64,000 nt of DNA from Lepidodermella squamata. Taxonomy: Eukaryota > Animalia > Gastrotricha. The notes beneath the pieces are model-generated. The model did not search any database. It saw only the letters and a program-made list of their open reading frames with translations, and was not told where the DNA came from. How positions within the stretch are numbered: position 1 is the first letter of the stretch; each line of letters begins with the position of its first letter. Made by a program: the position numbers and the translations under genes. The stretch is taken from positions 124,001 through 188,000 of the forward strand of contig JBLDXI010000010.1 in the NCBI GenBank assembly GCA_047495785.1, in the 5' to 3' direction. Below are positions 45,553-64,000 of the stretch, one piece after another.

Positions 45553-48500
45553 ATGAATAAGCAGAAGTCCGAGTAAGTAATTCTATTAAACGCCTTATAT
45601 TTACGTATTTACGCATTTTATTTTCAGTCTCACGAAGTCGGTAGCCCCAAATATGGGATCGTTAACCAAAAAGCCCAGCAATCTTCGGTCGACGATTGCG
45701 AAGAAGCCAACAAATCTAATAGGCGGAAACGCTACCGCGGCGGTATTGCCTGATAAATACGTTTCACCTGTCAGAGTAAGCATGATTAAATGATCTTTTT
45801 CCAGGGAAAATTGCCAAAGAAGCAGAAGGTTTTTAAAATAGTATACTTCTCGAGATCGTCTGTGATTAATCATAGTTATTCGTTTACTAGAGTAACTTTG
45901 ATGCACCCTAGAAATAAGTCCATAGATCAAATAGTAATCAATCTTAGAAATATTTCGGAATGATTTCTTTGCTGCGCGGCTGAATGAATCTACTAATTCT
46001 TTTCAGGTTTATGATGAGAACGGCGTAGATGTGACGCCTTTGCCGCTAACAGTTGTTGGAGAATCCCTGGCAGCCAAGCGTGCGGGTATGCACGACACTC
46101 CGGGGACACCAACTGATGCACTGTCTCAGCCATCATATGCGGCGACTACTACGCTAGGCACACAACTTGGAGGAGGTCCTTTCAGTCGCTCAATATTTCA
46201 ATCGAGCCAAATGATGGCTAGTGAATACATGGATGAAGGGCTCGATATTGGTGGTGGTGGCGCTGATCACGGCGTCTGGACACGTAAATGCAGCATCTTT
46301 TGATTTTAATTTTTCTATTATTGACATTCCAGAATCCTTGCGCAATGAGCTACCAAAGGAAGAACTGACTGAAGATGATCTTGTAAAGGAAGTAGTTTTG
46401 ACTTTGTCTGAGACTGACACGATGTGGATTTTCGAACTGGTGCCGACAACTGTTAATAAGGAGCTGGAAGAGGCACGAGTTGTTGAGGCGAATAATGAGA
46501 AATATCGTCAGGTAAACTTAGTACAATGGCATCATCTGGTTATAAAAATTCGTTTCCTACGGGTTTTAGTTGTGCAAGACTCGCATTGGCAATGACTTGT
46601 ATACCGAGCGTGGAATGAATACGTTTACCGAAGATCCTAAGACGCGGCAAATTCAAACTGACAAAATAACATATCAGGAGAAAGAGGCCATGTGCACAAC
46701 GTGGGATATGTACGATACCTACGACAGTCTCATCGACAAAGGTAAACTTGATATTCACTAAGAATTAAATTAAATTATTTCTCGAACCCCACGTTTTTCC
46801 TTCAATCATTGGATAACTTTCTTCTTGGGTATTTCAGACGCTATCAAACGAAGTAAGCGATATAACCCCATTGCGTGAACAATTTATAATCAATTCACAA
46901 TTTTGCTTGACGATTTTGCTAACAAATCACTTGAATTTAACGTTACATTACTAGTATCCCGCTTTTGAAGTTCAAGTAGTATTGGGTAAGCATATTATCT
47001 AGAGAAAACGTTAAAATTGCCGACAGATAGATGCTTACCTAGCATGTTTACATGAACATTGTTTTTACTGTATTTTTCAAATTGCCCACAGACGTCGATG
47101 ACGAGCCGGAATCTTTCGAAGGTAAAGACGCCAATCCCGAAAAGCAGGCGGCTGAAGGTGAAGTGGTACCCGCGAAAGACGACGAGGAAGACGATGGCAT
47201 CGAGGCTGATGCCGCCTCACTTGGAGCAGCTTCTGCCTCTTCGAGTCGCATGCACAGCGTTATCGCAAGTGCCAATGTATCAGTAGCAGGAAGTCAGAGA
47301 CCGGGCTCAACAATGCCAGATGGCAACACGCCTGCTCCTCTCGTTAAAGTTAACAAATCAGCGTTGAAGGTAAAATTCAACCTACAGCCCGTGAGCATTT
47401 ACTTAAAAGTTGAACTTTCAGTCGGAAAAACTGAAACAAGATTTATTTTACATGGAGCGATGCGTCAATATGAACACCTATCAGCCCAAGCTTGCAATCT
47501 ATAGAGGATTTGAGGTTATCCAAGGTTGGTCTATAAACTCAAATGTCTTTCAAATAGCTACAGCAAATTTCTATATAAACTCTCTTTAAATTAATGTGAT
47601 CATTTCATTTCCAGGATATAAGGGTGAGCGTACATTTTTAGAAGTTGAACAGCCGTATAGTTGTTATAGCCGTGCTGTATTAGGTCCTGTAGCATCAATT
47701 TGATTTGAACATTGTCTGTATTCTCATCGTCCTCCTATATTTCGAAATTATTCCATACCAAGCAATTATATCTAGATTAATGTTTAGTTGACAGTTTCGT
47801 TGATTCCACGAGTCTTAAATATCCAAATAAAATGCAACTTTTTACCGCGCAGAAATGCTGTCGAACGACGAAGCCGCTCTTCTCCTGAATCAGAAAACTG
47901 GTTTCTGCCTGGAGCGTTTGTGGATATACACTTGTGGCATTACAAAACCTCACAATATTTCCTGCCTGGCGTGGAATGGAAAAAATCCTGATATAATTGC
48001 CGTAGGCTACGGACAATTTGAATTTACTGACAAGAAACCTGGAGTTATTTGCTGCTGGTCTTTGAAAAATCCTGAGTACCCCGAGCGTCTATATCATTGC
48101 CCATGTGGCGTTACGGCTCTCGCCTTTTCTCGACAAAATCCAAACCTCCTCGCGGTGAGATTTTTTAAATTCTAAAATAGCCTACCTTTTCATCTTAAAT
48201 TTTGCCAGGCTGGACTCGAGGATGGTAGTATAGCAGTCTATAACGTGATGACACGTCAACCAGATCCAATCGTCGATAGTTTGTGAGTTGAAAATCGTAG
48301 AATAATTGAAATTTTCTAGGAATTTTTAGCTGCATAGATTATTTTTTGTTCATTCACGCGTAAAAATAGCTACTTCATTGTAAAATTTAACTAATAGCGG
48401 ACACGCTGAGAAAAATCAGGGCAAAGCGAACAGGTAAATTTCGATGAATCAACACATTCGCACTCTTTGATCTGAAAACGAAAAAAATCTTCTTTTCCAC

Positions 48501-50119
48501 GCATGAATCGCGTTTCTTTGCATGACCCTGCAACAGTTCACACGCCATTAAATCATTTAATTTTTCAAAAAAAAACGAATAACTCACTATAAGTTTGCAA
48601 CCTAACTGCTGTTCATAGCTGTTCAGTTACCTAATACTTTCTTCTTGAATTGGCATTTGAGAATTTTTTCATTTTATTCAAATGAATTGATTTCAGCGAT
48701 GTAACTTCTCGTCACATCGGTGCCGTATGGCAAATTTGCTTCGTCGAAAGAGACACTGGAATGCAGGAGGGCAAAAGCGATAACATTGTTTCGATCGCAA
48801 CCGATGGCCGCGTTATTCAATGGACTATTCGCAAAGGCTTCGAACAAACAGGTAAAAAATTAGCTCAATAGTGGGACTAATTGTTTCAAAGCGATGATTA
48901 GTGTAGTAAACTTCGTGACTAGTTTAACTCTTCAATTTTCTGAATGTTACGGTTGAATAGCTAATGCAGCTGGTAAGAAAACTTGAATGATGCGACTTAT
49001 GACGAATCCTATTACTTGCCACTCAATTTTAATTTATCAATTCCAAAAAGCCCTTGATTAAAACTCATCTGACCAATCACTAATCGTAAATTTTCTGTTC
49101 TTTAATTTATCAAACAATTTCCTCTACATAATTTTATTCATTTTCGTCGATCACATACGTCCCGAATTATGGCAAAATTTAACGTTGTTGTGTGTTATTT
49201 CGTATCAGAGCTCATGAAAATCAAGAGAACCGCCAATAAGCGGCTTGGAAAATTGGCTCAAGATCGCCGGTTCGAGGCGTTGATATCTCGATATGCCGGC
49301 GCTTTGTGCTTCGATTTCTGGCCGCAAGATAACAACATCTACCTGGTCGGAACCCACGATGGTCCAATTCACAAGTGTTCTTGCAGTTATAACGAGCAAT
49401 TTCTTGAGACTTACTCGGGCCATCGCGATCCAGTTTACCGTATACACTGGTCGCCATTCCATCCAGACGTCTTTCTTAGCTGCTCAGCCGATTGGACGGT
49501 TCGATTGTGGCACCAAGAGCGGTACCAGCCAATTTTGACCTTCACATCGGTTTCTAGCCAAGTCTTCGACTGTTGCTGGTCACCGAAATCAGCAACTCTA
49601 TTCGCGTGTGTGAAAGAACATGTCTTGGAGCTTTGGGATCTAGCTATTGATGTGTTCGTTAAATTGGTCTCTTGATAATTGATTTATGTGAAATTGTGGA
49701 CTAATTGTAGGCTTGACCCTGTTGTGAAGCTGAACTCACCTGTGAACGTCATGTTTTCAACTGTCGCATTTTCATTGAATTCTGACGTAAGTTCAACTTC
49801 CAATTTGAATCTGACGCTTGGAATCTATCGAAATTTCATTCACAGTGCTTACTTGTGGGTGACAGTAACGGTCAAGTAACAGCTTACCGTCTGTATAATC
49901 TACCACCAGCAACCGATGTAAGTCAACCTTTTTCAAATTTTACTTAATTTTTTAATGTCGGATGTTGAATAGGCTGATCGATTGGGTGAAATCATTACAA
50001 CTTCGCTGAGCAGTCAACTTGAAACACTGCCCGAATCTGAATCAAAAGCTGTTGTGCCAGCTGATGGGCAAAAGCCTAACAGCCGCGAAGATACCAGCGA
50101 GGACTTCTTATATGACTAA
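45553..50119 (+). CDS. DNAI4: Dynein axonemal intermediate chain 4 (WDR78); many short introns, with candidate microexons
   Basis: Motifs VYDENGVDVTP, LSETDT, WDMYDTY, MERCVNMNTYQPK, LERLWIYTC, CCWSLKNPEYPERLY and HKCSCSYNEQFLETYSGH, plus WD40 repeats (FLSCSADWTVRLW). Confidence 0.92.
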
Positions 50120-51322: not shown

Positions 51323-52896
51323 GTTAGACCCTGACACCAATTCTGGTGATTTAACAGGGCTTCGGTTGATGAGTTAAAACCTGTCACCGATTATTCGGTG
51401 TTAGGCGCAGAGTGGCACAATAGAATACGAAAATAAATTATAAAAATAGAGCTACGATCTATTTGGTCCATTCAGACACCTGCTCGATGAAGAATTGCTG
51501 CAAGTAGGCGGCTTTGCGACAGGCTTTCGAGCTAGTCAGCTTACGAATGAAGGGGTCGGTCTGACTCCATGCCTTCGAGCCGCGGATGAGGAGGATGAAC
51601 AAACTAAAGTATTCCCGCTGGTCAAATTCGGATATCTAAAACAATAAAAATGCCAGCTCACATCAGCCATCAGCAATTGGAGCTTACATTAGTTTTCACC
51701 AGGTATGGAGACTTAGAAAAAGATTCAAGGTTAGTTCAAGTGAATTCTGGTTAAATTCATATCTAATTGCACTATCTGCTGTTTCTACAGGCCCGGATTT
51801 TGTAACCATACTGGCAAATCCAGCTGGGAGCAAATGCCTGGGGCCTTAAAACAGGCGCATCTCAAGTAAGTATTTCCAGGAGTGTAAGCTGGCGATTTTA
51901 TCTCTAACTCCGCTATATGGCGACAGCTTTCAAGAATCGATTTGGGTCTGGTCTGGTTATTTCCAGCTACTTGAATTCAGTCAAAGCATTTTGATAAAAC
52001 ACTTGAGATTACCGGAGGCACCTGAAGATAAAAAGCATCTGGATTAGGTATTAGGTGTCCTATTTTTAGGAAGAAACTTTATAGATTTCAGATTTCAGGA
52101 CCTCAGACCTGAGCATAGTGATCTGCGTCTGTGGAAGCTCAATACATAGGTATAAAGGCAGGTAACTTGGTACTGATGTGCAGCAATGCGGCGATTTGGA
52201 CTGTGTCAACATGGGCGAAATGCAAACATTTTGAAATAAGCGGGCGTAACATAGGTGAAGATCGCTCGAAGCAATGTCATTGGTTACATTTTATGTACAT
52301 TTTATGGTAGTTATTGCTTTGCTAAAAATATATTTCTGACCTAATGGCAGAATGGGTTGATTCTTACAAAGAAAATGTTGCTAAAACATTTCGGCGACTC
52401 TTGCATGATTTTTTGCACTTGGCAGTTGTCAGTTTGTTCGCGATTCGCGATCTCTCATTCCTCATTCCTGGCTAACTTGATCATCACAATAAGCTCATGG
52501 CTCTTTTACCTTGAAGTGCATCGGCCAGTTTTACTCCCTGCGCTCTTCATCTTTAGATCGTTAGATTCATTGCTAGATCTTTTACTGATGTAATGCGATT
52601 TCGGTGTCAGGCTTGGATGAGCTGCTTGCTGCATATCCAGTTTAGATATATTGGATAGAGCAAGCCAACAAGCTGATATCGAAGCAAGTTGTTGAGTCAA
52701 ATGAATAGTTGTCCGAATGCTAAAGTGAATGCTTTATCGTGTTCATGCTATATGCTCGAATATATTTCCAATCTGTGGCTAGTTCTATTGCTTGAACTGA
52801 AGCCTTCCCATGAAGTTAGGTTGCTCTTAACGGTTGTATTTGCGCAAAAATACTGACCGTTGCTATATTGTTGTATTTATTAGTACCTTGTTACTT

Positions 52897-53232
52897 ATGA
52901 CTAGTGATAAACCTTCTCACGAGTTGGCTAAGTACCTGAACAAAACTCTGAAAATAAACGTTGCTGACGGCAGAACTCTTACTGGACAGTTTTTGTGTAC
53001 TGATAGCAGCTCGAACGTTATTTTGTCGCAATGCGAGGAGCGCTTTAAGCGGAACGGTAATTTTTAACTCCGAAGCTTTTTACTTGTTGCCTAACCGGGA
53101 TATAATTCAGAGAAAGAACACGAGAGAAGCCTCGGTTTGGTTATGGTACCTGGTCGTCACATTCTATCAATTCATTGCTTGAAATCCGAAGTAAACGCTG
53201 AATCTACACCTGTTGCTGTTAGTTCCGAATAA
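52897..53232 (+). CDS. NAA38: NatC auxiliary subunit NAA38/LSMD1 (Sm fold); exons 52897-53056 and 53111-53232
   Basis: LNKTLKINVADGRTLTGQFLCTDSSSNVILSQCEE...RSLGLVMVPGRHILSI. Confidence 0.9.
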
Positions 53233-53233
53233 A

Positions 53234-54932
53234 ATGGAAGACTCTAGTTCTATCGACAGCTCAGACTTTCATCATTTGTTTGAGTCCTGGATTGAACATT
53301 TTAGCCCCGCTGATCCAGCAGAGGAATTGAGCGTTCTTTATCATGTTGTGTGTTTGATGAATGGATTCGTTTCTACCCCAGATCAAGAAGTCGCACCATG
53401 GAGCAGCGGCTCTTCAATTTTGCGTCTCACTTATGCTTTGCAGAATGATGACTCGAATAATATTGTTAAACTGGCATTTATAAAGCAGCGGCCTGACTGT
53501 TTATTAATTCACTGCTTCGTCGATGTCGATGGATCAACTAGGAAAGAATTCTCGTTGGAAATGTCGATGCCACCTCGTGACCAAGCCACTGATACCACTA
53601 GTGAATCTGAGAAACATCGAGTGATGTTGAAATATGCTGAAATCAATGAGAAATTCGCTGGCCCGCTTTTGACCGTCATTTCGCGTCGTATCAAAGGCGA
53701 CCAACTTTGGAACCTTAACTCATTGCCGCCGGAATTGAAAACCCGAATTTTATCGCTCCTTGACGCTCAAAGCTTGGCAAGGCTAATGGCCAGCTGCCGT
53801 TTGTTTTACGCTTTGGGACGTCTGGATCGATTTTGGAAGCCGCTGTTCATCAAACGTTTCGGCAGTGATCCTCGGTGAGTTACTTAGTTTTTTAGTTGAT
53901 GATAAGGTTTAAGCGTTAAGTTTCGCACATTGAATAAAATTTTCGTTTTCCTAAATTCTTAGTGACGTCGTTCGTCGTTTGATAGCAGAGATGAGCGAGA
54001 GGGATATCAAACGTCTAGAGAAAATAGTTTACGATGAGCTTATCGCGACGGAAAGCCCTGAGGCTCAGAAACCGCCGTCGGATAGCCAACAACCGGAACG
54101 TCCGCGTACTCGGAGTTTCGAATTTAATCAAACTGCCTCATCAGTTCTCGGCACGGTGGTTCACCGCGCCTATTCCTACCTCGCTAACCAGCAAAAAAAC
54201 GGGCAATCTGTTACGCCAGTCGCCGTTCAATACTGTGCTACGTTCTTACCTCATCAATTTATGCCGGGCATTACTCCAGCGTATTGCGCACCGCCGTTTT
54301 ATTTTTCTAACTTTCATCCAACGTTGTACCGTCAAAATTTGCTACACGAAGTTGGATTCTACGGTCCTCAGAGCTTCTTCCATGTCTATCCCTCGTTTTA
54401 TTAACAAATCACTAGTAGCTATTCGGTTCAGTTTACTTTTTGGCTGGGTTACTAATGTCTAGTTACAATGTTGATTTTTTCACTCACAGACCAATAGTTT
54501 TATCAATTATTATTTTCTGATTCCGGTTCATTGTTGAGCTTATCATCTTATTATAGTCAATAATGCTGCGAAATTTTTGTTGTAAAAACTTGATTCGATT
54601 TCAGATATTTTTCTCGCCTGTCGAGTTCGGAAGATAGGTGCAACGATTTTTACCAATTGTTCTGTGAGTGCGCATCAGCTGATGCCGCAGCTCTGAAGCG
54701 AATGCGCCAATCTATACCTCGATTTCCTGGGGTGCGGCCATACCCGCCCTGGTCCCCGTTTGCGCCATTTCCGAACCGACCAAACCCGTTTCGACCGCAT
54801 CATTTCATCCCGCCGAGCATTTTCCCGCCATCTAATATCGACCCGGATCGGATGCCTGACCTGGCTCGTCCACACAACCTGTTGCCAAAAATAAATTTCT
54901 ATAATTTTGGCGGCGGAGGCGGTCTCATTTAG
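53234..54932 (+). CDS. FBXO7: FBXO7/nutcracker-like F-box protein; exon 53234-53874 plus last exon 54605-54932 (alternative last exon 53963-54404)
   Basis: FP-like domain (LSVLYHVVCLMNGF...LRLTY), F-box (LNSLPPELKTRILSLLDAQSLARLMASCR...W) and a Pro-rich C-terminus (…DPDRMP). Confidence 0.75.
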
Positions 54933-55036
54933 AAATATATCCTATAAAATTATAATCCCTGTGAAATAAATAAAGAATTCACTACAATAAAAAATCGTGC
55001 TTTTTAACGCGTTTGTTTTTGTATAGTCGAGTTACT

Positions 55037-57794
55037 ATGATTTTCGAGGGAAAACTTCAAAGCTTGCTGGAAGAATTGGCTAGAAATGACTCGGCGAGTG
55101 GAATGGCTTCTATTCTACAAGGAATTACCGAAGCTTGCTCAAAAGATACATTCGAAGCTGTTGAAAATCTGATTAATCAGCTGGGTAGTGAAAACGAATG
55201 CGAAGCAATCTCGAAAATGGCGTTGATTTATTCGGTTGAAGCTTTGTTGAATAACTGTGAATTGACTGGGAAAGATGCTCGATCTTGGCTAACTTTGCCA
55301 GGAAAATTTTCCAAGCTTATTTTCTCGCTACAACCCAAGGAGCGGGTTCATATCATGCTGAAAATTTTACCTCAGCTCGTGTCGAAAATTGAAAACCAGC
55401 CATTACCGATTCGCGCTTCAATTTACATGGAAAAGGCGTTATCAAGCCGCCGAGAAGAAAATTTCGAAACAATCGGCAGCGAGTTGATTTGCATTATTTT
55501 AAATAACCCTGCTGTTTTCACATTGGACGCGGATTTCGTGAAATCGCCTGATGTTTGGCGGGTCATTAAGGAGGGCTTGAGTATGCCTGGAATGATTTGC
55601 CTCCGCGTCTTGAACTCGTTGACTCATTTAATTGCGTTTTGCGTTGAATCGAAAGGAGAGATCGATTGCCGGGTTTCGGTTAATGGCGAAATTGTATTTT
55701 CTTGGTCTAAACTGGAACATGCGAAGGCTTCGCAGTTTTGGCAAACATATCTCGCTCTGTTCACGAGCTTTGAAACCAGCCAATCTGCTCATGTTATCGA
55801 TCCTTTCCTAGCGAAAGCTGCCACTTTGTTCTCGTCTTGGTCATCGCTGAGCATTTCTGAATATTGGATGGAGCTGTTTTGCCAGCGAGCGTGTAATCTC
55901 GGAAATTTCAGTGTTTCAAAGCGATTTATGCACGAGTTGCTAAACTTGGACTACATAGAGACGAACCCAAGAGCTCTCAAAGTAATAAATCCATCTATTT
56001 TTTTCAACAGCCTAATACCTATATTTTATTAGTTTTTGCCGAAAATTCTGGCGGCCGCTTTTACTGAGCACAGGTTTTTCGCGATTGCTCACTCTGCAAC
56101 TTCGGCCCGTTTTCTTTCCAATGGCCAGTCGTATTCCGAGCACCTATATCCAATATTCACAGATCTTTGCCAGTTATTCAAGCGAATTCTCTACGGAAAG
56201 CTTGATATCCAAGTCAAACGTAAGATTTAATAGGAAAAATCGGCATTTCCCTTATTTAATGTGATTAAAGGCGAGTTTTTGGTCAGTTGGTTCGGCACTG
56301 CTAGTCAATGCGTATATTCATCGCCAAGCTTATCGTTCATGCTATTCGCTTGTTCTCAGCCGATTGGGACCGATCAACCGGACTTCGAAAACCTTCGAAT
56401 TTTCGACGCTAAATTTTTGAATGATTTCAGGTTTTCATTATTTTGCATTAGTTCAATATTATGCAAAATTCAAATTTTTAGGGAGGTGGCAAATTCTCAT
56501 ATGACTGCATCCGAGACCGAATTCAAGTTTTTATTTGGCGTTTCCGTAATTCGAATGCTTGTTAATTTTGTTGATTGCGTAAGCTATTATTCATTGGGCC
56601 CGAAATTTTGATTTTATCCTCGAATTTTCAGAAATCTGTTCAGCTATTTGATCTGATGCGATTTGTTACCAGCTTGGCTGGAACTTTGGACGAAAACATT
56701 CAACAATTCCTGTTAGAAATGCTGTTCACGGGACTTTTGATCAATCGAAAAGAGGGATTTTCATTCGTAACGGAATTCGATAATTTTATGCGAAAATTGC
56801 TAGAACAGCCTCATTTCGACAAAGAGCAATCTCATTCGCTGACGACATATGGCGTCGCGTTGATCCGCTTATCAAGCAGAACTCCTGAAACCGAGAAAAT
56901 GGTGGGAAATCTGTCGGCATTTATTGACTCAATTCTCGGAAAAGTGTCCACAAATCCTTACATTCCCGTTCATCGGGTTTTACTAAGCTTGGACATTGTC
57001 TCAAGTGCGGTTCTAAATTCGGGAAATCCGTTCTCAAAATGGGCTAAGCAGTGTTTGGCAACGAGATGTGAAGATATTTCAATATTTTTCACGACCCAAC
57101 TTGCTCAATTAACACCGGAGAACAAGCCTGGATTCGAGTATATTTGGCACAAATGGGTCGATGCAATTTCTGTCTTGGATGGTGGATTACAGTATGATTC
57201 GATTTTCCGAATGGCGACCGCACTATTCGAACAATTTCTCTCATCACCGGATTCAACAATCGGGTCTTTGATAATTAAGCTGTTTTCGAAGATTCATTCG
57301 CATTTGATTGCGAATTTCGGGGAATCTTTCATCATGCAATTGAAAAAAGCTTTACCGATAGTTCAAGCTAAAAATTCAATGCTGGATCTGTTCCGGCTTA
57401 AAACCATGCTGCCGATATGTGATTCGACTGCTTTATCATCTGATTTCGAGTTATTAATCGAAAAAGCTGAAGTGATAGGCACAAATGCCGAAGCAATGTC
57501 CACCGTGTTCATTTATTGCCGTAAAATTATGGTAATTAAATATTTTGTAAAAATTGATCTAGAAATTAAATAATTTTTGCACTTTGATTTTTTTTACATC
57601 AGGACTCGGATAGGTTGTCAGGCGATTCGACTGTTGAGTTGTTCCGCCGAACTGTCGATGTGCTGTTCGGGCAAGTTCACGAGATCGTGGCATCGGCCGA
57701 TCCTAACTGGCGCGTTGTTTTACGCGGCTTCATCTCAACTTTCCTGCAATGCCGCGCGATTGAAAATTTCGGCCTATTTCCAGTCATTGAAAAG
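55037..57794 (+). CDS. TARBP1: TARBP1/Trm3-like tRNA 2'-O-methyltransferase, N-terminal helical part; at least 6 exons; probably continues beyond the window
   Basis: FWQTYLALFTSFETSQSAHVIDPFLAK...YWMELFCQRA resembles the TARBP1 N-terminal region from memory. Spliced ORFs end at the donor GAAAAG|gtgagc. No SpoU domain in the window. Confidence 0.6.
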
Positions 57795-57803
57795 GTGAGC
57801 ATT

Positions 57804-60498
57804 TTAAATGTCGTCTATATCAAGCATACTCCCCACGCCTGTTTCGTCCGTACTCACCCTTACTACGATATTAGGAAAACTTCGCGATAACCGCATGCCT
57901 AATGATGGTTGAAGTTCGTTGTGGTAATTTGGGGGTACGTCCGTTAGACGCCAAAATTCAGACATATCCTCTTGATTGTGCGCTCCATCTGTTACCATTT
58001 GATCGGTATTTTCCGACTGGCGATGGCCGCTCCGGGAATGGCCATTTCCTTTTGCCGCGTTTGAATTGGCGCTGTAGCGCTTCGACGAGCGATGGTCAAA
58101 CGACAAACTTCGCCTTCTTTTGATTTTTTCGCCACTGAAAACGTTCTCTTTATGCATGGTTTTAACAACAGGTTTCCTATGGCCGAATTTTGATTTTAAA
58201 ACTAGCCGAAATCGCTTGTTTAACAGGCAGTAGATGACGAAATTTCCGGAATATTCGAGTATAATCAAGACATAAGCAGTTAGGACTAGGTAGCGGTACG
58301 GCTCTTTATCGAACAGATCCGGCTCTTTCCATATGACAATTGCGCTTATTCTGCTGAAAAGTGTCGATGGAATTTCACCGGATAACGCGAGTAGAGTCGC
58401 GGCGATGAGGGTTATAGTAAGCGAGACGTTAGTCCGGGTAAAGGCACGCGTTGTCATGCACGTTTTCGGTTTTGGTTTACATCTAGAGAAAGACTGGCGT
58501 ATTTCTCGGCGTGATGTTGATCGATGCACGAGGACGATTAACAGGAAGTTGAATGTTGCTAAAACGAGAATGGATCCGATGTTTAGGAATAGTAGCCGTA
58601 GATAAGAGTATATGCTGAACCAGCCGTTAGGTTCCGACGCCCATAGCCGCTGTTTTCGACAGCCTTCACCGTCGACGTACCATGCCACCATTCGTGGGGC
58701 GTTGAGTAAAGCGGCTAGACCGCAAACGAGGGCACCGAATAATCGAGCCCTGCATCGTGGTCCTTCGAGTTGTATCGATATAGGTATCGCATGGCTTGTT
58801 ATTGCGGTTGGGTTTTGAATGAAAACGTATCTGAAAGGAAAATAGCGAATTAGATAATTCTATAGGTAATATTTTCTTTTATCGATAATCACATTTTTGT
58901 CCCAAACGGCTTGTTTACAAGGGAATTGAGCTAAATTCTGTAAAATTCCGCGCAATAGAGTGTTCATAAGGCTTCACTTATCAATTTTCGAGTGCTGGAT
59001 GGAATTCACGAGATTTTTTCTCGATTCGAGACCTTTTTGGCCAGTTAAGCAGGTTGTGTAAAATTTGAAGTGCTGAATTCTATTAAGAGGGAATAAATTG
59101 GAACTATACTCAAAGGGTTGTCAAGTTTGCGCCCTAAATGTAGGGTTCCCGTACTAAGTTGGGGCCCGGGCATTAGATTTTCCCAACATGTGGTTATTAG
59201 AGTTTCAAGTCTTTTAGAAACTCTGAATTCAATTATTATCATTTTTGCGCAATACATCCAACTATTTCACAAATTTTCTGCTATGAGGGTCAGATTACGA
59301 TTGAAACTCATCCTGCGGAGCCGATATCGATTCCTGGTATCGATTTTCCTAATCAGTGATTTTTCCGGTAACTTGGAAGTCAATATTTAATTTTCCCTAA
59401 CTAGCTAATGGTACGAGGTATGACGTAGCTAAAATAAAAAATCCTGGGACATCAATACAGATAGAAAAATGAAAAGCCGAAATTTCAAAGAATCGAAAAA
59501 TGTAGTGCCTGGATGCTTAATTTTAGTGATGGAACCTCGTTTTTATTTAGACCTTACACCCAATTAAGAGAAAGAGCTCAATCGTTCAATGAGCTCAATG
59601 GATTCAAAGGGGTTTTAATTCCATAGGAAAACGCGAATAGAATAATCCTATTAATATAGGCACTTCCGGTATTCTTCAAAGTTCGATTATTCCAGTTCGA
59701 TTATTCCAGTAAAAAAACATGACATTGAAGCTCAAGTAGATTGAAAGCCTATCATGAATATTTAAGATAGGAGCGCGGTAAAAACCAGGAGTCCAATACA
59801 TTTCGAAGTAGCGTCATAAACAGTAGCTAAAGAAATGGGCAAGCCCTCTAATGCATTCATTTGGCAAAAAGGGTTCAGCATGATTCACATATTTTTGGCA
59901 CTGAAGCTCGTTTTCCACCTTCTTTCATTACACAGTGGAGCCTTCTTTCATTACACTTGATCGCAAATCAATTTCCAAGATAGGTACCTCACAGTGCATA
60001 AAACTGATTAAAATTTAGCTTGCCAAGATTTTGAAAATCACTAAGATTTTGCCATAATGAATCATAAAAATCGTTATAACAAAGTAGAAACAAAGTAGAG
60101 ACAAAGTAGAAAGTTATAACAAAGTAGAAGCCTGACCTGTCTATTGTCACGGCAACTGTCAGCAGAAGTGATGAGCATGTACTGATACTGCCAAGCGGGA
60201 GGTAAATGTAAGCTGTATAAATGTTCGACCATAACTGATTTTTAAAATGAATCCGCGATATCAGCTCCAACGAGTAGAAAAGTAGACTGAGCAAATCTGC
60301 GATCGCTAGATAGACCAGGTAAATGTAGGTGGGCGCAACCAGGCGCCGATCGGCTAACACGACAACATTCAAAATGTTGATCAGTACGCCTAGTATGCAA
60401 AGGGTGGGTAAGGCGTAGCCGTACAGCGCATGTTCGACCGGGTGTAGTGATGTTTGATTCGTTGCATTCAGTGCACTGGGACACACCACAGATGTCAT
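57804..60498 (-). CDS. Class A neuropeptide GPCR (FMRFamide/sex-peptide receptor-like), copy 1; exons 60498-60137 and 58830-57804
   Basis: TM1 GVLINILNVVVL, TM2 YLVYLAIAD, TM3 TVAVTIDR|Y, TM6 GEIP, TM7 NFVIYCLLNKRFR. Confidence 0.9.
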
Positions 60499-61910: not shown

Positions 61911-64000
61911 TCACACAACATCGCTTTTAGAATCGGCTTCAACGCTTATAATAATACCGACATCTTGCGAAATTTTGCTACTCCTCTCATCGTTTTCTTC
62001 AATAGTCGGCATTGCGTTTGATTGAGTCGGGCTCGTTTCAGGGTGTCCATTGCTGTCATTATTGCTCATATTTGAATAAGGTGGAGGCGACGACGGGGCC
62101 ATTATCATCGAGTTGCAACTCAACTGAGGCCCTAAATTGGGCAATCCTGAGCTGCTTCGAGTTTGAAGTAACGGAGCACTTGCTATTGACGCGCGTGCTC
62201 TACTCGATCGTTCGTGTTCGGTCATGAATTTCGGGGCATTTGGCGATTTTTCCGCCCAGCCAGGGCATAATTTAAGGCATAGAAGGGCGCGAAATTTTTT
62301 GTTCAGCAGGAAATACGTGATGAAATTGCCGCTGTATTCAAGCAGTAACAGCGTGTAAGCCAGTAGGAATAAGCTGCGAAATGGCTGCTTATCGAGAACA
62401 GCCGGGTTGCCCCATAGTACAGCTGCACTGGTTCGATTGAATAAGGTGGATGGAATTTCACCGGCTAGGGCTAGAATCGTAGCTGCAATTAGGGTCAAAG
62501 TCAGCGATCGCTGTTGGCTACTTTGAGCGCCTCGACTCGCCGCCGATGCGACAGAATCTCGGTGGCTTCTCATCGACGACCGGTGCACTAGAATTATTAG
62601 CAGTAAATTGAACACTGCTAATAAAATGATTGAGCCTGTAAAAAAATTCAAAGGTGTCAAGTTTCTGCCTGGAAATTTAGGCTTAAATTTCGCGCATACC
62701 AACGTTTAAAATCGCGAGTCGCACGTACGAGTAGATGCTGAACCAGCCTTTTGAAGCTTTAGCGTAGTCGCGATACATTCGGCAACCGGTGTTCATATCG
62801 ACGGAGATAGCGAACATGCGCGGGATGTTGATTATCCCGCTTGTGACGATTAGCCCTAGGTTAAGTAGGCGGACTATGTTTCTTTCGCGTTGAGACTGTG
62901 CGCCTGTTTGAACTTTTGGGTCTCGCACGTAGGCGAATCTGTGAAACGAGAAACAAGGATTTGTTGAGGAATGTTCATTTCAGAGTTGAAAAATTAGAAA
63001 TAACCCTTTTTCCATTTTGTTCTTCTCCCATACTTTTTCACTGGTGGAAGAAATTGAAATGAAAATCGAAATTATGGGGAATGGCGTGATGTTGATGTTG
63101 ATGTGAGTGCGATTGTAAAATTTATTTTGAAAAATGGGAAGGAAGGGAAAAAACGTGTAGAGAATTTTTCCAACAATTTTGTTTCCTTTTTCGACGCAAA
63201 ACATCTTCGAGCGATGCGCAACACGTGTTTCAGCGACAAAGAAATACGAGCGAAACTTGTTTCTGAGCTTCGTTCCGGCGGAAACAGTTTTCTAACGGAA
63301 ATATATTTCGTGGAAAAAGCTGTTCGGAGGTTATAGAAAAGCTATTCTGGGGTTTGCGGTTCGGCTTGAGTGAGAAAATATTTTTTCTTGAGATTTTTAA
63401 AAAATATGTCAAAGTTTAAGTAATAAATATTCAAGTTCTGTTTTTGGTTGAAAATTTTGAATTTGAAGTTTAAAGGATAAAAGTTCCTCCTTTAGAATTG
63501 AAAAAATTCGAAATTTTCACAGATTTCCTGCGAATTTTAGAAACAACATTTCTCTCCGATTATTCTCATTTTCCTGAATATTTCCTTATTATTAATAAAA
63601 TTGGCATATTTACCTGTCAATCGTGAAAGCAACTGTGAGCATAAGTGAGGAAGTAGTGGTTACACTGCCAATGGGTAAATAAACGAAAGCCGTGAAAAGC
63701 TCGTGCCAAAACTGCCCGGCGAAGTGAATTTTCGCTACGAGATCGACAAAGTACAAAATCAGCGTGATGAGATCGGTGAAAGCCAAAAATGCTAGGTACG
63801 TGTAGGTGCGTGCCGACAACCTCCTGTCAGTCAGAACTATTATGTTTATAATATTCGCCACCACGCCGAATAGGCTGAGCCCGGGCAGGCCGTAGCCATA
63901 AAACGCGCGTTCGAGTGGCGCGTAGGCCTTGACTGATTTATTGCAAAAAAGATGGCGAGAATTCGAGAGCAGCACCGAGACAACGGTATAGTTCGGGTCG
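61911..64000 (-). CDS. Class A neuropeptide GPCR copy 2, 5' end beyond the window; exons >64000-63614, 62938-62700, 62635-61911
   Basis: Paralogue of copy 1 (GWFSIYSY, GEIPSTLF, LEYSGNF..Y.LLNK.FR), with DRF at TM3. Confidence 0.9.

Follow-up and report, generated by a model that had tools for sequence, protein, structure and literature searches.

A one-nucleotide gap between an NAA38-like gene and an F-box gene of Lepidodermella squamata, and a possible shared messenger RNA

Gene layout and protein identities

The window, which is the whole stretch of 64,000 nt from Lepidodermella squamata that was analysed, contains three genes that are real, lie on one strand and are packed as tightly as an earlier note on this DNA had claimed (Table 1). 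The RNA evidence consists of assembled contigs of two RNA runs, X1 and X3; a further run, X2, is DNA-like. All introns were confirmed by RNA contigs, namely the single intron of NAA38, those leading to the alternative 3' exons of the F-box gene and five in the third gene, and all are of the GT..AG type. The first gene encodes an NAA38-like protein of 93 amino acids. A lone A at 53233 separates its stop codon from the ATG of the F-box gene (53234–53236), which bears out the claimed gap of 1 nt, and the F-box coding region is in the +1 frame relative to that of NAA38.

The F-box gene has two alternative 3' exons. Isoform a RNA runs on unspliced through 54405–54604, as seen in an X1 contig covering 54201–54633, while exon 2b encodes a proline-rich tail. 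Between the stop codon of exon 2b and the ATG of the third gene lie 104 nt, in agreement with the earlier estimate of about 105 nt. The AATAAA signals described there number three (at 54965, 54969 and 54986) and, judging from their position, are likely the poly(A) signals of the F-box gene. The third gene extends beyond the window. X1 contig 5 has five GT..AG joints in this gene, followed after 57795 by a loose end of 255 letters that is absent from the window; the next exon, spliced to 57795, lies outside the window.

Table 1. Features of the gene cluster, in window coordinates.
Feature	Position	Strand	Evidence or remark
tttattAG	52876..52883	+	13 nt ahead of NAA38 ATG; sequence
NAA38-like (LSM-domain) exon 1	52897..53056	+	Pfam LSM 5.8e-8
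NAA38 intron, 54 nt, GT..AG	53057..53110	+	X1 joint 53055>53110, contig depth 240.7
NAA38-like exon 2, ends in TAA 53230-32	53111..53232	+	spliced translation open, in frame
ctgttAG, acceptor of the earlier note, inside NAA38 coding region	53216..53222	+	polymorphic last base
AATAAA hexamer overlapping NAA38 stop codon	53228..53233	+	sequence; candidate poly(A) signal
Stop/start junction TAA-A-ATG	53230..53236	+	crossed by X1 contig 1, X3 contig 14
F-box (FBXO7-like) exon 1	53234..53874	+	N-terminal alpha/beta domain, then F-box residues 161-206
F-box gene alternative 3' exon 2a, stop 54402-04	53963..54404	+	X1 joint 53873>53962, depth 126.3; in frame
F-box gene alternative 3' exon 2b, stop TAG 54930-32	54605..54932	+	joint 53873>54604 in X1 (depth 75.9), X3; in frame
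Three AATAAA hexamers	54965..54991	+	
tttttgtatAG	55016..55026	+	10 nt ahead of third gene's ATG
Large helical-repeat gene (TARBP1 of the earlier note)	55037..57795	+	six exons in window, 827 aa, frame still open

The name NAA38 is supported by the Pfam LSM domain and by human NAA38 (7mx2_C), which was the top match among solved structures with an E-value of 1.3e-9, whereas the best Sm protein, SmB, reached only 3.5e-5. NAA38 of S. pombe and of yeast matched in the same search.

The assignment of the second gene to FBXO7 holds in part. The F-box itself is certain (Pfam PF12937, F-box-like, 6.4e-10), and FBXO7 is its probable, not its proven, identity. The family PI31_Prot_N gave no Pfam match in this protein, even at E 10. 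A low-confidence model of the N-terminal domain (pLDDT 47.6) consists of two helices, five strands and one helix, which is the correct order for an FP domain. The FP-domain structures 4l9c and 2vt8 scored Z 5.2 and 5.0 against this model, values that unrelated folds tie. For the same domain, the PDB sequence search was empty and Foldseek returned no significant match. Atlas features place the F-box protein with arthropod clusters that combine F-box and PI31_Prot_N (score 0.94, 193 shared features). The proline-rich tail of isoform b matched neither Pfam nor the sequences of solved structures, and word searches for relatives of the F-box exon and of NAA38 exon 1 were empty.

The third gene has been likened to human TARBP1, and we take this likeness as an assumption. 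Pfam recognized no family on its exons inside the window, and the + strand of the remaining window encodes no SpoU-type methyltransferase domain. The methyltransferase domain that defines TARBP1 would be encoded on exons past the window end. In two atlas searches the features of the third gene pointed to generic HEAT-type repeats, and HMMER found one remote relative among 1.84 billion proteins (P0001, 30% identity). JGI metagenome scans were empty for the F-box exon query and for the third-gene alignment query. The TARBP1 identity is putative, and the proposed functional link of acetylation, proteasome regulation and tRNA methylation finds no support.

RNA coverage, acceptor-like sites and start codons

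X1 contig 1 (503 nt, depth 240.7) joins NAA38 exon 1 to exon 2 by a splice and extends through TAAAATG into the F-box gene. It begins at 52984 and ends at 53540, so that neither reading frame is fully contained. According to depth-bin arithmetic this contig alone covers 52984–53540, and no contig lies in the NAA38 intron. In X3 contig 14, 16 nt of exon 1 immediately precede 53110. The total X1 depth of the neighbouring F-box-only stretch is 239.9 versus 240.7 for the junction contig, and therefore the NAA38 and F-box cistrons are equally represented in X1. X1 depths add up elsewhere as well: isoform a (126.3) and isoform b (75.9) together account for the shared 3' part (201.5). However, a contig is not one molecule, and mRNAs that overlap by at least 31 bases merge into one contig; with an overlap of ~40 nt, depths of ~200 for NAA38 and ~240 for the F-box gene would match the contig mean equally well.

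At the 5' side, the only contig in the X1 bin 52885–53081 starts from 52984, which leaves NAA38 without coverage over its first 87 coding nt; the preceding bin (52688–52884) has an X1 depth of 5. Inverted repeats, sought at 52200–52950 as a cause of strand-switching contigs, were absent. A low-depth X3 contig stops at 53244, 11 nt past the AATAAA at the NAA38 stop codon, and X3 coverage is absent from there until 53412.

The earlier note had proposed a polycistronic unit of all three genes. This is retained for NAA38 and the F-box gene, which are joined in one cis-spliced RNA assembly, but the gap between the F-box gene and the third gene is not crossed by any RNA contig. X1 contigs are absent from 54887 to about 55173, leaving the 3' end of the F-box gene without coverage, and the third gene has ~8-fold lower coverage. 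Synteny of the F-box gene and the third gene failed in the only relative found, where a retroelement fragment lies upstream of the third gene instead. In our reading, the third gene gives a separate mRNA and is only a close neighbour of the pair.

Each of the three ATGs is preceded by an acceptor-like site, as had been described. The site ahead of NAA38 may serve in trans-splicing or may mark the 5' end of the mRNA. The one ahead of the third gene has T at 10 of the 18 upstream bases and is among the top 2.5% of the window's AG sites, and the reference allele of the site inside NAA38 has pyrimidines at 13 of 18. In the window, ~15% of positions in general, and 16% of ATGs, have a pyrimidine-rich AG 5–25 nt upstream. 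One acceptor-like site means little, and its occurrence at three of three ATGs is only mildly unusual.

The site inside NAA38 is polymorphic. Position 53222 is G in the window and in X2, and A in both RNA runs; the G>A change accounts for a depth of 240.7 out of 240.7 in X1, 4.1 out of 4.1 in X3 and 0 out of 102.4 in X2. With the A allele the AG is lost, and no AG remains from 53190 to the F-box ATG (none within 44 nt). Since this site reads AA in X1 and X3, it cannot be the general route to F-box mRNA. The expected leader sequence was not found either: X1 and X3 contigs have no leader-like loose end at 52883, 53222 or 55026. This absence is weak evidence, because the assembly may trim leader-bearing ends and contigs drop rare variants. 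An Rfam search over the whole window yielded no spliced-leader or other RNA family.

Start contexts were graded by the general rule of a purine at −3 and G at +4, which may not be the consensus of this animal. By this rule, the NAA38 start (cttATGa) is weak and the F-box start (aaaATGg) is strong. Between the two starts lie two ATGs, one of which opens a frame of 5 codons; the other is an in-frame Met at 53143 that begins a frame of 29 codons closing at the TAA of NAA38. Being in a strong context, this latter ATG would be expected to capture scanning ribosomes, which counts against the bicistronic reading preferred below. NAA38 contains 1 out-of-frame ATG, whereas synonymous resampling weighted by local codon usage predicts 5.06 (P 0.007); this null fits both neighbouring genes. 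However, the deficit is gone when the codons of NAA38 itself are permuted (mean 1.77, P 0.39). Likewise, 37% of the 282-nt windows of neighbouring genes hold one ATG or none, which makes the NAA38 count unremarkable. The UGGGA motif of TURBS elements was sought in the spliced mRNA from 52884 to 53260, where TGGGA does not occur.

A possible shared mRNA and its alternatives

The reading that we prefer, with a probability of roughly 45%, is that NAA38 and the F-box gene reside on a shared mature bicistronic mRNA that is translated via leaky scanning or reinitiation. Both genes would depend on one promoter, located upstream of 52884, and would mostly be kept together in one cis-spliced mature mRNA. 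NAA38 would be translated from the first ATG, with its poor context. By leaky scanning, some ribosomes would pass this ATG and reach the well-placed ATG of the F-box gene, while others would resume after the short frame that ends 1 nt ahead of it. Such stop-start reinitiation had been raised in the earlier note, and on a shared mRNA it offers the best fit to the data; the translational step itself is presumed. More generally, we infer both the presence of the two frames on single RNA molecules and the manner in which the second frame is translated. The third gene would be a separate, less abundant mRNA, with its 5' end formed by leader trans-splicing at 55026 or by its own start site. All in all, the pair may well represent a known though uncommon arrangement, in which two unrelated housekeeping genes are made from a shared message.

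The main rival, which we consider less likely, is an operon without intercistronic space that is resolved by a spliced leader. One pre-mRNA would then extend over NAA38 and the F-box gene, perhaps including the third gene, and each pre-mRNA would yield only one of the two mRNAs: either NAA38 is cleaved and polyadenylated just past its stop codon, at the AATAAA of 53228–53233, or the leader is joined inside NAA38, at 53110, 53189 or, with the reference allele, 53222. The position of this AATAAA over the stop codon and the end of the X3 contig at 53244 are in line with such processing, and both count against a shared mRNA. The reference-allele acceptor at 53222 is good, with its 13 pyrimidines, and the AATAAA hexamers 35–61 nt ahead of the T-rich AG at 55026 suggest similar processing for the third gene. 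Moreover, operons without intercistronic DNA exist in Ciona and, as SL1-type operons, in Caenorhabditis (PMC1488885). Against this, leader-like loose ends are absent at every site in both RNA runs, and the F-box gene is well covered even though both runs lack the AG at 53221–53222. The other AGs are at least 45 nt upstream and stand in poor context, or coincide with the cis acceptor at 53110, where joining would leave an upstream reading frame of 29 codons. The equal X1 depth of both cistrons would be a coincidence. Furthermore, the F-box gene and the third gene share no contig, and their adjacency is missing in the relative.

Alternatively, the pair might consist of two independent overlapping units, with the F-box start site in the NAA38 intron or exon 2, the NAA38 mRNA ending in the F-box coding region, and the single contig produced by assembly merging. 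In compact genomes, untranslated regions often overlap, and an overlap of 31 bases suffices to merge RNAs into a contig. In addition, the third gene retains an acceptor-like site and, in the relative, functions in the absence of an F-box neighbour, and therefore independent expression is possible in this neighbourhood. Nevertheless, we consider independent units distinctly unlikely for the pair. The junction contig also holds the splice of exon 1 to exon 2 at a depth equal to that of the F-box body, the contigs contain no additional F-box-only coverage, and a promoter would have no more room than 340 nt of coding sequence plus the 54-nt intron. Far less probable still is a fusion protein made by alternative cis-splicing, from the donor after 53056 to the reference-allele AG at 53222. 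The acceptor context is good and the frame holds (G+TT, then CCG AAT AAA ATG), which would lead NAA38 exon 1 into the F-box protein, but an in-frame match has a chance of 1/3 and the joint 53056>53223 is absent from every run. For X1 and X3, which have no AG at 53222, this absence does not bear on the reference allele.

Comparison with known systems

Neither bicistronic translation nor the leader-resolved operon is new as a mechanism. Dicistronic genes are known from flies. In green algae, bicistronic and polycistronic mRNAs read by leaky scanning or reinitiation are established (PMC7896298). Similar to these bicistrons, the pair described here has a small first protein, a very short gap and a larger unrelated second protein, as far as the contigs indicate. 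The weak context of the first start and, if the depletion is real, the small number of ATGs in the first frame are also features of bicistronic mRNAs. However, the NAA38 cistron differs from them in retaining a strong-context in-frame ATG. Adjacent stop and start codons are likewise found in caliciviruses and influenza B, which use termination-reinitiation with a TURBS element carrying the 18S-complementary UGGGA. In contrast to these viral systems, UGGGA is lacking upstream of our junction, and the first frame is a cellular gene.

Operons of Ciona intestinalis and SL1-type operons of Caenorhabditis elegans have no intercistronic DNA, and their products are thought to be mutually exclusive (PMC1488885), as the earlier note had proposed for NAA38 and FBXO7. 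Our pair resembles both in its same-strand genes without spacer, and the Caenorhabditis operons also in the AATAAA within the upstream cistron. Yet, each mRNA of these operons retains untranslated regions of its own, and the end of the upstream mRNA lies precisely at the acceptor of the downstream one. In our pair, 1 nt separates the two coding regions and no leader was seen; an acceptor would fall within the NAA38 coding sequence and a poly(A) site within that of the F-box gene. Among small marine invertebrates, the chaetognath Paraspadella gotoi has several spliced leaders, with leader genes that reside in ribosomal DNA clusters and operons that were defined by distance and leader reads; the trans-splicing results and operon methods of that study do not describe coding gaps of 1 nt (PMC12460157).

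If the shared mRNA is real, start-codon choice on one message, rather than separate promoters, would determine how much NatC acetyltransferase subunit and how much SCF substrate adaptor is made, and the animal would offer a system for cellular bicistronic translation alongside leader trans-splicing. As a conjecture that we regard as somewhat unlikely, the animal may keep a class of true bicistronic mRNAs, with a small housekeeping protein, such as NAA38, before a larger unrelated gene, inside leader-resolved operons. It is similarly speculative that stop and start would touch in such bicistrons, combining two modes of multi-gene expression in one unit. Annotation calls for caution: where distance is the sole basis of operon calls, the NAA38/F-box pair would be counted among the leader-resolved operons. 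The natural G/A variant at 53222 provides a ready-made test of the importance of that acceptor.

Gene layout and protein identities

The window is eukaryotic, with a G+C content of ~41% and short introns, mostly of 51–54 nt with exceptions of 71 and 88 nt. The evidence from RNA consists of assembled contigs of public sequencing runs, of which X1 and X3 are regarded as RNA because introns are missing from their contigs. The gene models of NAA38, the F-box gene and the large third gene are all borne out by these contigs. Re-reading of the sequence confirmed the junction coordinates of the earlier note, its three AATAAA signals (54965, 54969 and 54986) and its acceptor-like AGs ending at 52883, 53222 and 55026, and revealed a further AATAAA at 53228–53233 that it had not listed, overlapping the NAA38 stop codon. 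A pyrimidine-rich AG lies 5–25 nt upstream of ~15% of all window positions, and hence acceptor-like sites carry little weight in themselves. The motif GTTACT precedes the start codons of both NAA38 (gttacttATGa, 52890–52900) and the third gene (gttactATGa, 55030–55040), a few bases past an acceptor-like AG; either chance or a common 5' element may account for this.

Features of the NAA38/F-box region and its surroundings
Feature	Coordinates	Strand	Remarks	Evidence
WD-repeat gene, axonemal dynein intermediate chain-like	47855–49675	+	upstream of NAA38	translation alone
NAA38 (LSM domain)	ATG 52897; TAA 53230–53232	+	54-nt intron 53057–53110	sequence and RNA contigs
F-box gene	ATG 53234; last stop TAG 54930–54932	+	starts one base after NAA38 stop	sequence and RNA contigs
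F-box isoform a, 3' exon	from 53963; stop 54402–54404	+	RNA then unspliced onward	contigs
F-box isoform b, 3' exon	from 54605	+	proline-rich tail	contigs
Third gene, large	ATG 55037	+	starts 104 nt past F-box TAG	sequence and RNA contigs
Rhodopsin-type receptor genes (two)	57804–60498; 61911–63975	opposite		

The dynein-like gene would point to an animal bearing motile cilia or flagella.

The first protein (93 aa) contains a Pfam LSM domain. In a search of solved structures its top match was human NAA38 (7mx2_C, E 1.3e-9), which beat every Sm protein by four orders of magnitude, supporting its predicted identity as NAA38. The second protein is probably FBXO7-like, an assignment short of proof. 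Residues 161–206 form a clear F-box, one of the protein's two isoforms ends in a proline-rich tail, and its language-model features place it next to arthropod clusters with F-box and PI31_Prot_N domains. The domain N-terminal to the F-box had no Pfam match. In a poor single-sequence model of this domain (pLDDT 47.6), a pair of helices is followed by five strands and one more helix. The model aligned with the FP domain of FBXO7 (Z 5.2) and that of PI31 (Z 5.0), scores that unrelated folds equalled.

The third protein remains open for 827 aa within the window and then continues, its RNA being spliced from 57795 to an exon outside the window. It matched no Pfam family, feature comparison suggests a likely HEAT-type repeat protein, and only one genuine relative, without a name, was found among 1.84 billion proteins searched. 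The methyltransferase domain that defines TARBP1 was not found in the window, and TARBP1 is used here only as the candidate name given by the earlier note. The functional tie between acetylation, proteasome regulation and tRNA methylation that had been proposed for the three genes gained no support.

A proposed shared RNA for NAA38 and the F-box gene

In agreement with the proposal that NAA38 and the F-box gene occur in common RNA, one cis-spliced X1 contig spans the junction of both reading frames. In this contig (record 1; 503 nt, depth 240.7), exon 2 of NAA38 follows 72 nt of exon 1 across the splice, and the sequence runs through TAAAATG to 53540. The contig is the sole one of X1 across its stretch, as is apparent from the exact match of 72 × 240.7 / 197 = 88.0 and 169 × 240.7 / 197 = 206.5 to the tabulated bins. 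The adjoining F-box-only stretch has a total X1 depth of 239.9. Hence, NAA38 and F-box sequences appear equally abundant in the cis-spliced RNA population.

We favour a mature bicistronic mRNA, translated by leaky scanning or reinitiation, with a probability of about 0.45. The start context of NAA38 is poor (cttATGa) and that of the F-box gene is good (aaaATGg). The spliced RNA has only two ATGs between these starts, an out-of-frame one with a frame of 5 codons and an in-frame Met with a frame of 29 codons that ends at the TAA of NAA38. Synonymous resampling with local codon usage predicted 5.06 out-of-frame ATGs in NAA38 against 1 observed (P 0.007), and the same resampling predicted the counts of two neighbouring genes well. 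This deficit is a hint, since it vanished when NAA38's own codons were permuted (P 0.39) and was unremarkable compared to windows of the neighbouring genes. In contrast to viral reinitiation systems, the spliced mRNA lacks the UGGGA motif upstream of the junction.

An alternative explanation, which we consider less likely, might be that leader trans-splicing within NAA38 yields the F-box mRNA. Cleavage directed by the AATAAA at the NAA38 stop would fall among the opening codons of the F-box gene, and a low-depth X3 contig stops at 53244, with X3 coverage resuming only at 53412. Moreover, mRNAs sharing 31 bases would merge into one contig, and depths of ~200 and ~240 also match the contig mean. 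Operons of Ciona and SL1-type operons of Caenorhabditis likewise have no spacer DNA, with products that are possibly mutually exclusive (PMC1488885), and we count them as support for an operon reading of the pair. However, the contigs of X1 and X3 showed no leader-like loose end at 52883, 53222 or 55026, where non-genomic leaders had been expected. The five loose ends listed were homopolymer runs at 52765 and 52862, a short exon 1 piece at 53110, the continuing splice at 57795, and an X2 end at 56808. This absence is weak evidence, because leader-bearing ends may be trimmed in assembly. Stronger evidence comes from a variant at position 53222, which is G in the window and in the DNA-like run X2 but A in every X1 and X3 RNA contig. 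The ctgttAG of the window is thus ctgttAA in both RNA strains, which lose the proposed acceptor AG (53221–53222) and have their next AG >44 nt from the F-box ATG. Yet, the F-box gene is still well covered, and therefore the acceptor at 53222 cannot serve as the general route to F-box mRNA. An internal promoter for the F-box gene seems improbable, and a fusion of NAA38 and the F-box gene by alternative splicing very much more so.

All arrangements considered are of known kinds (PMC7896298, PMC1488885, PMC7986045, PMC12460157). The NAA38/F-box pair adds to these, and the G/A variant found in nature makes its arrangement easy to test. The reference G allele at 53222 creates an acceptor that would put NAA38 exon 1 in frame with the F-box protein; both RNA sets carry A.

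Upstream of NAA38, a low-depth X1 contig ends in 22 non-genomic A past 52862, a position 6 nt downstream of a branch-point-like TACTGAC and 21 nt short of the AG at 52883. Another X1 end has 20 non-genomic T ahead of 52765. These ends could represent adenylated plus- and minus-strand RNAs or cDNA artefacts. Two strand-switching joints (52557/52675 and 52608/52724) occur next to these ends, and no inverted repeat was found to account for the joints.

Two F-box isoforms

Exon 1 of the F-box gene is spliced in frame to either of two 3' exons in the contigs of X1 and X3. The X1 depths are additive, with isoform a (126.3) and isoform b (75.9) together accounting for the shared 3' part (201.5). The alternative coding exons (53963–54932) are mutually exclusive and provide an aromatic-rich or a proline-rich C-terminal tail, while the coding exon of isoform b forms 3' untranslated region in isoform a. 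Contigs of X1 and X3 (records 4 and 16) both break off precisely at 54886, which leaves 44 nt to the F-box stop codon, with no loose end reported; this end may reflect a branch or variant common to both RNA strains.

The third gene and its relative

The suggested cluster of three genes holds for the tight same-strand packing, but no contig joins the third gene to the F-box gene. X1 contigs leave 54887 to ~55173 uncovered, and hence nothing ties the two together. The contig depth of the third gene was 27, compared to ~200 for the F-box gene.

Three metagenome contigs from a single species (L001–L003) carry the relative of the third gene. The relative retains the two opposite-strand receptor genes that lie downstream. 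Synteny with the F-box gene did not hold, as neither an F-box nor a NAA38 gene occurs within 1.2–1.6 kb upstream on these contigs, where the relative has a reverse-transcriptase fragment instead. This fragment is of the non-LTR type with a YADD motif, and immediately precedes the helical-repeat gene (L001 730–876; L002 3–383). An acceptor-like site precedes the relative's ATG by ~30 nt. Leader addition to the third gene is plausible in both species, and would be independent of an operon. The odds that the third gene is part of one transcription unit are about even.

Because the exon to which 57795 of the third gene is spliced falls outside the window, the two receptor genes seemingly lie inside its intron. 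The distant relative shows the same order, with a helical-repeat gene followed by two opposite-strand receptor genes (L001, 4060–9847).
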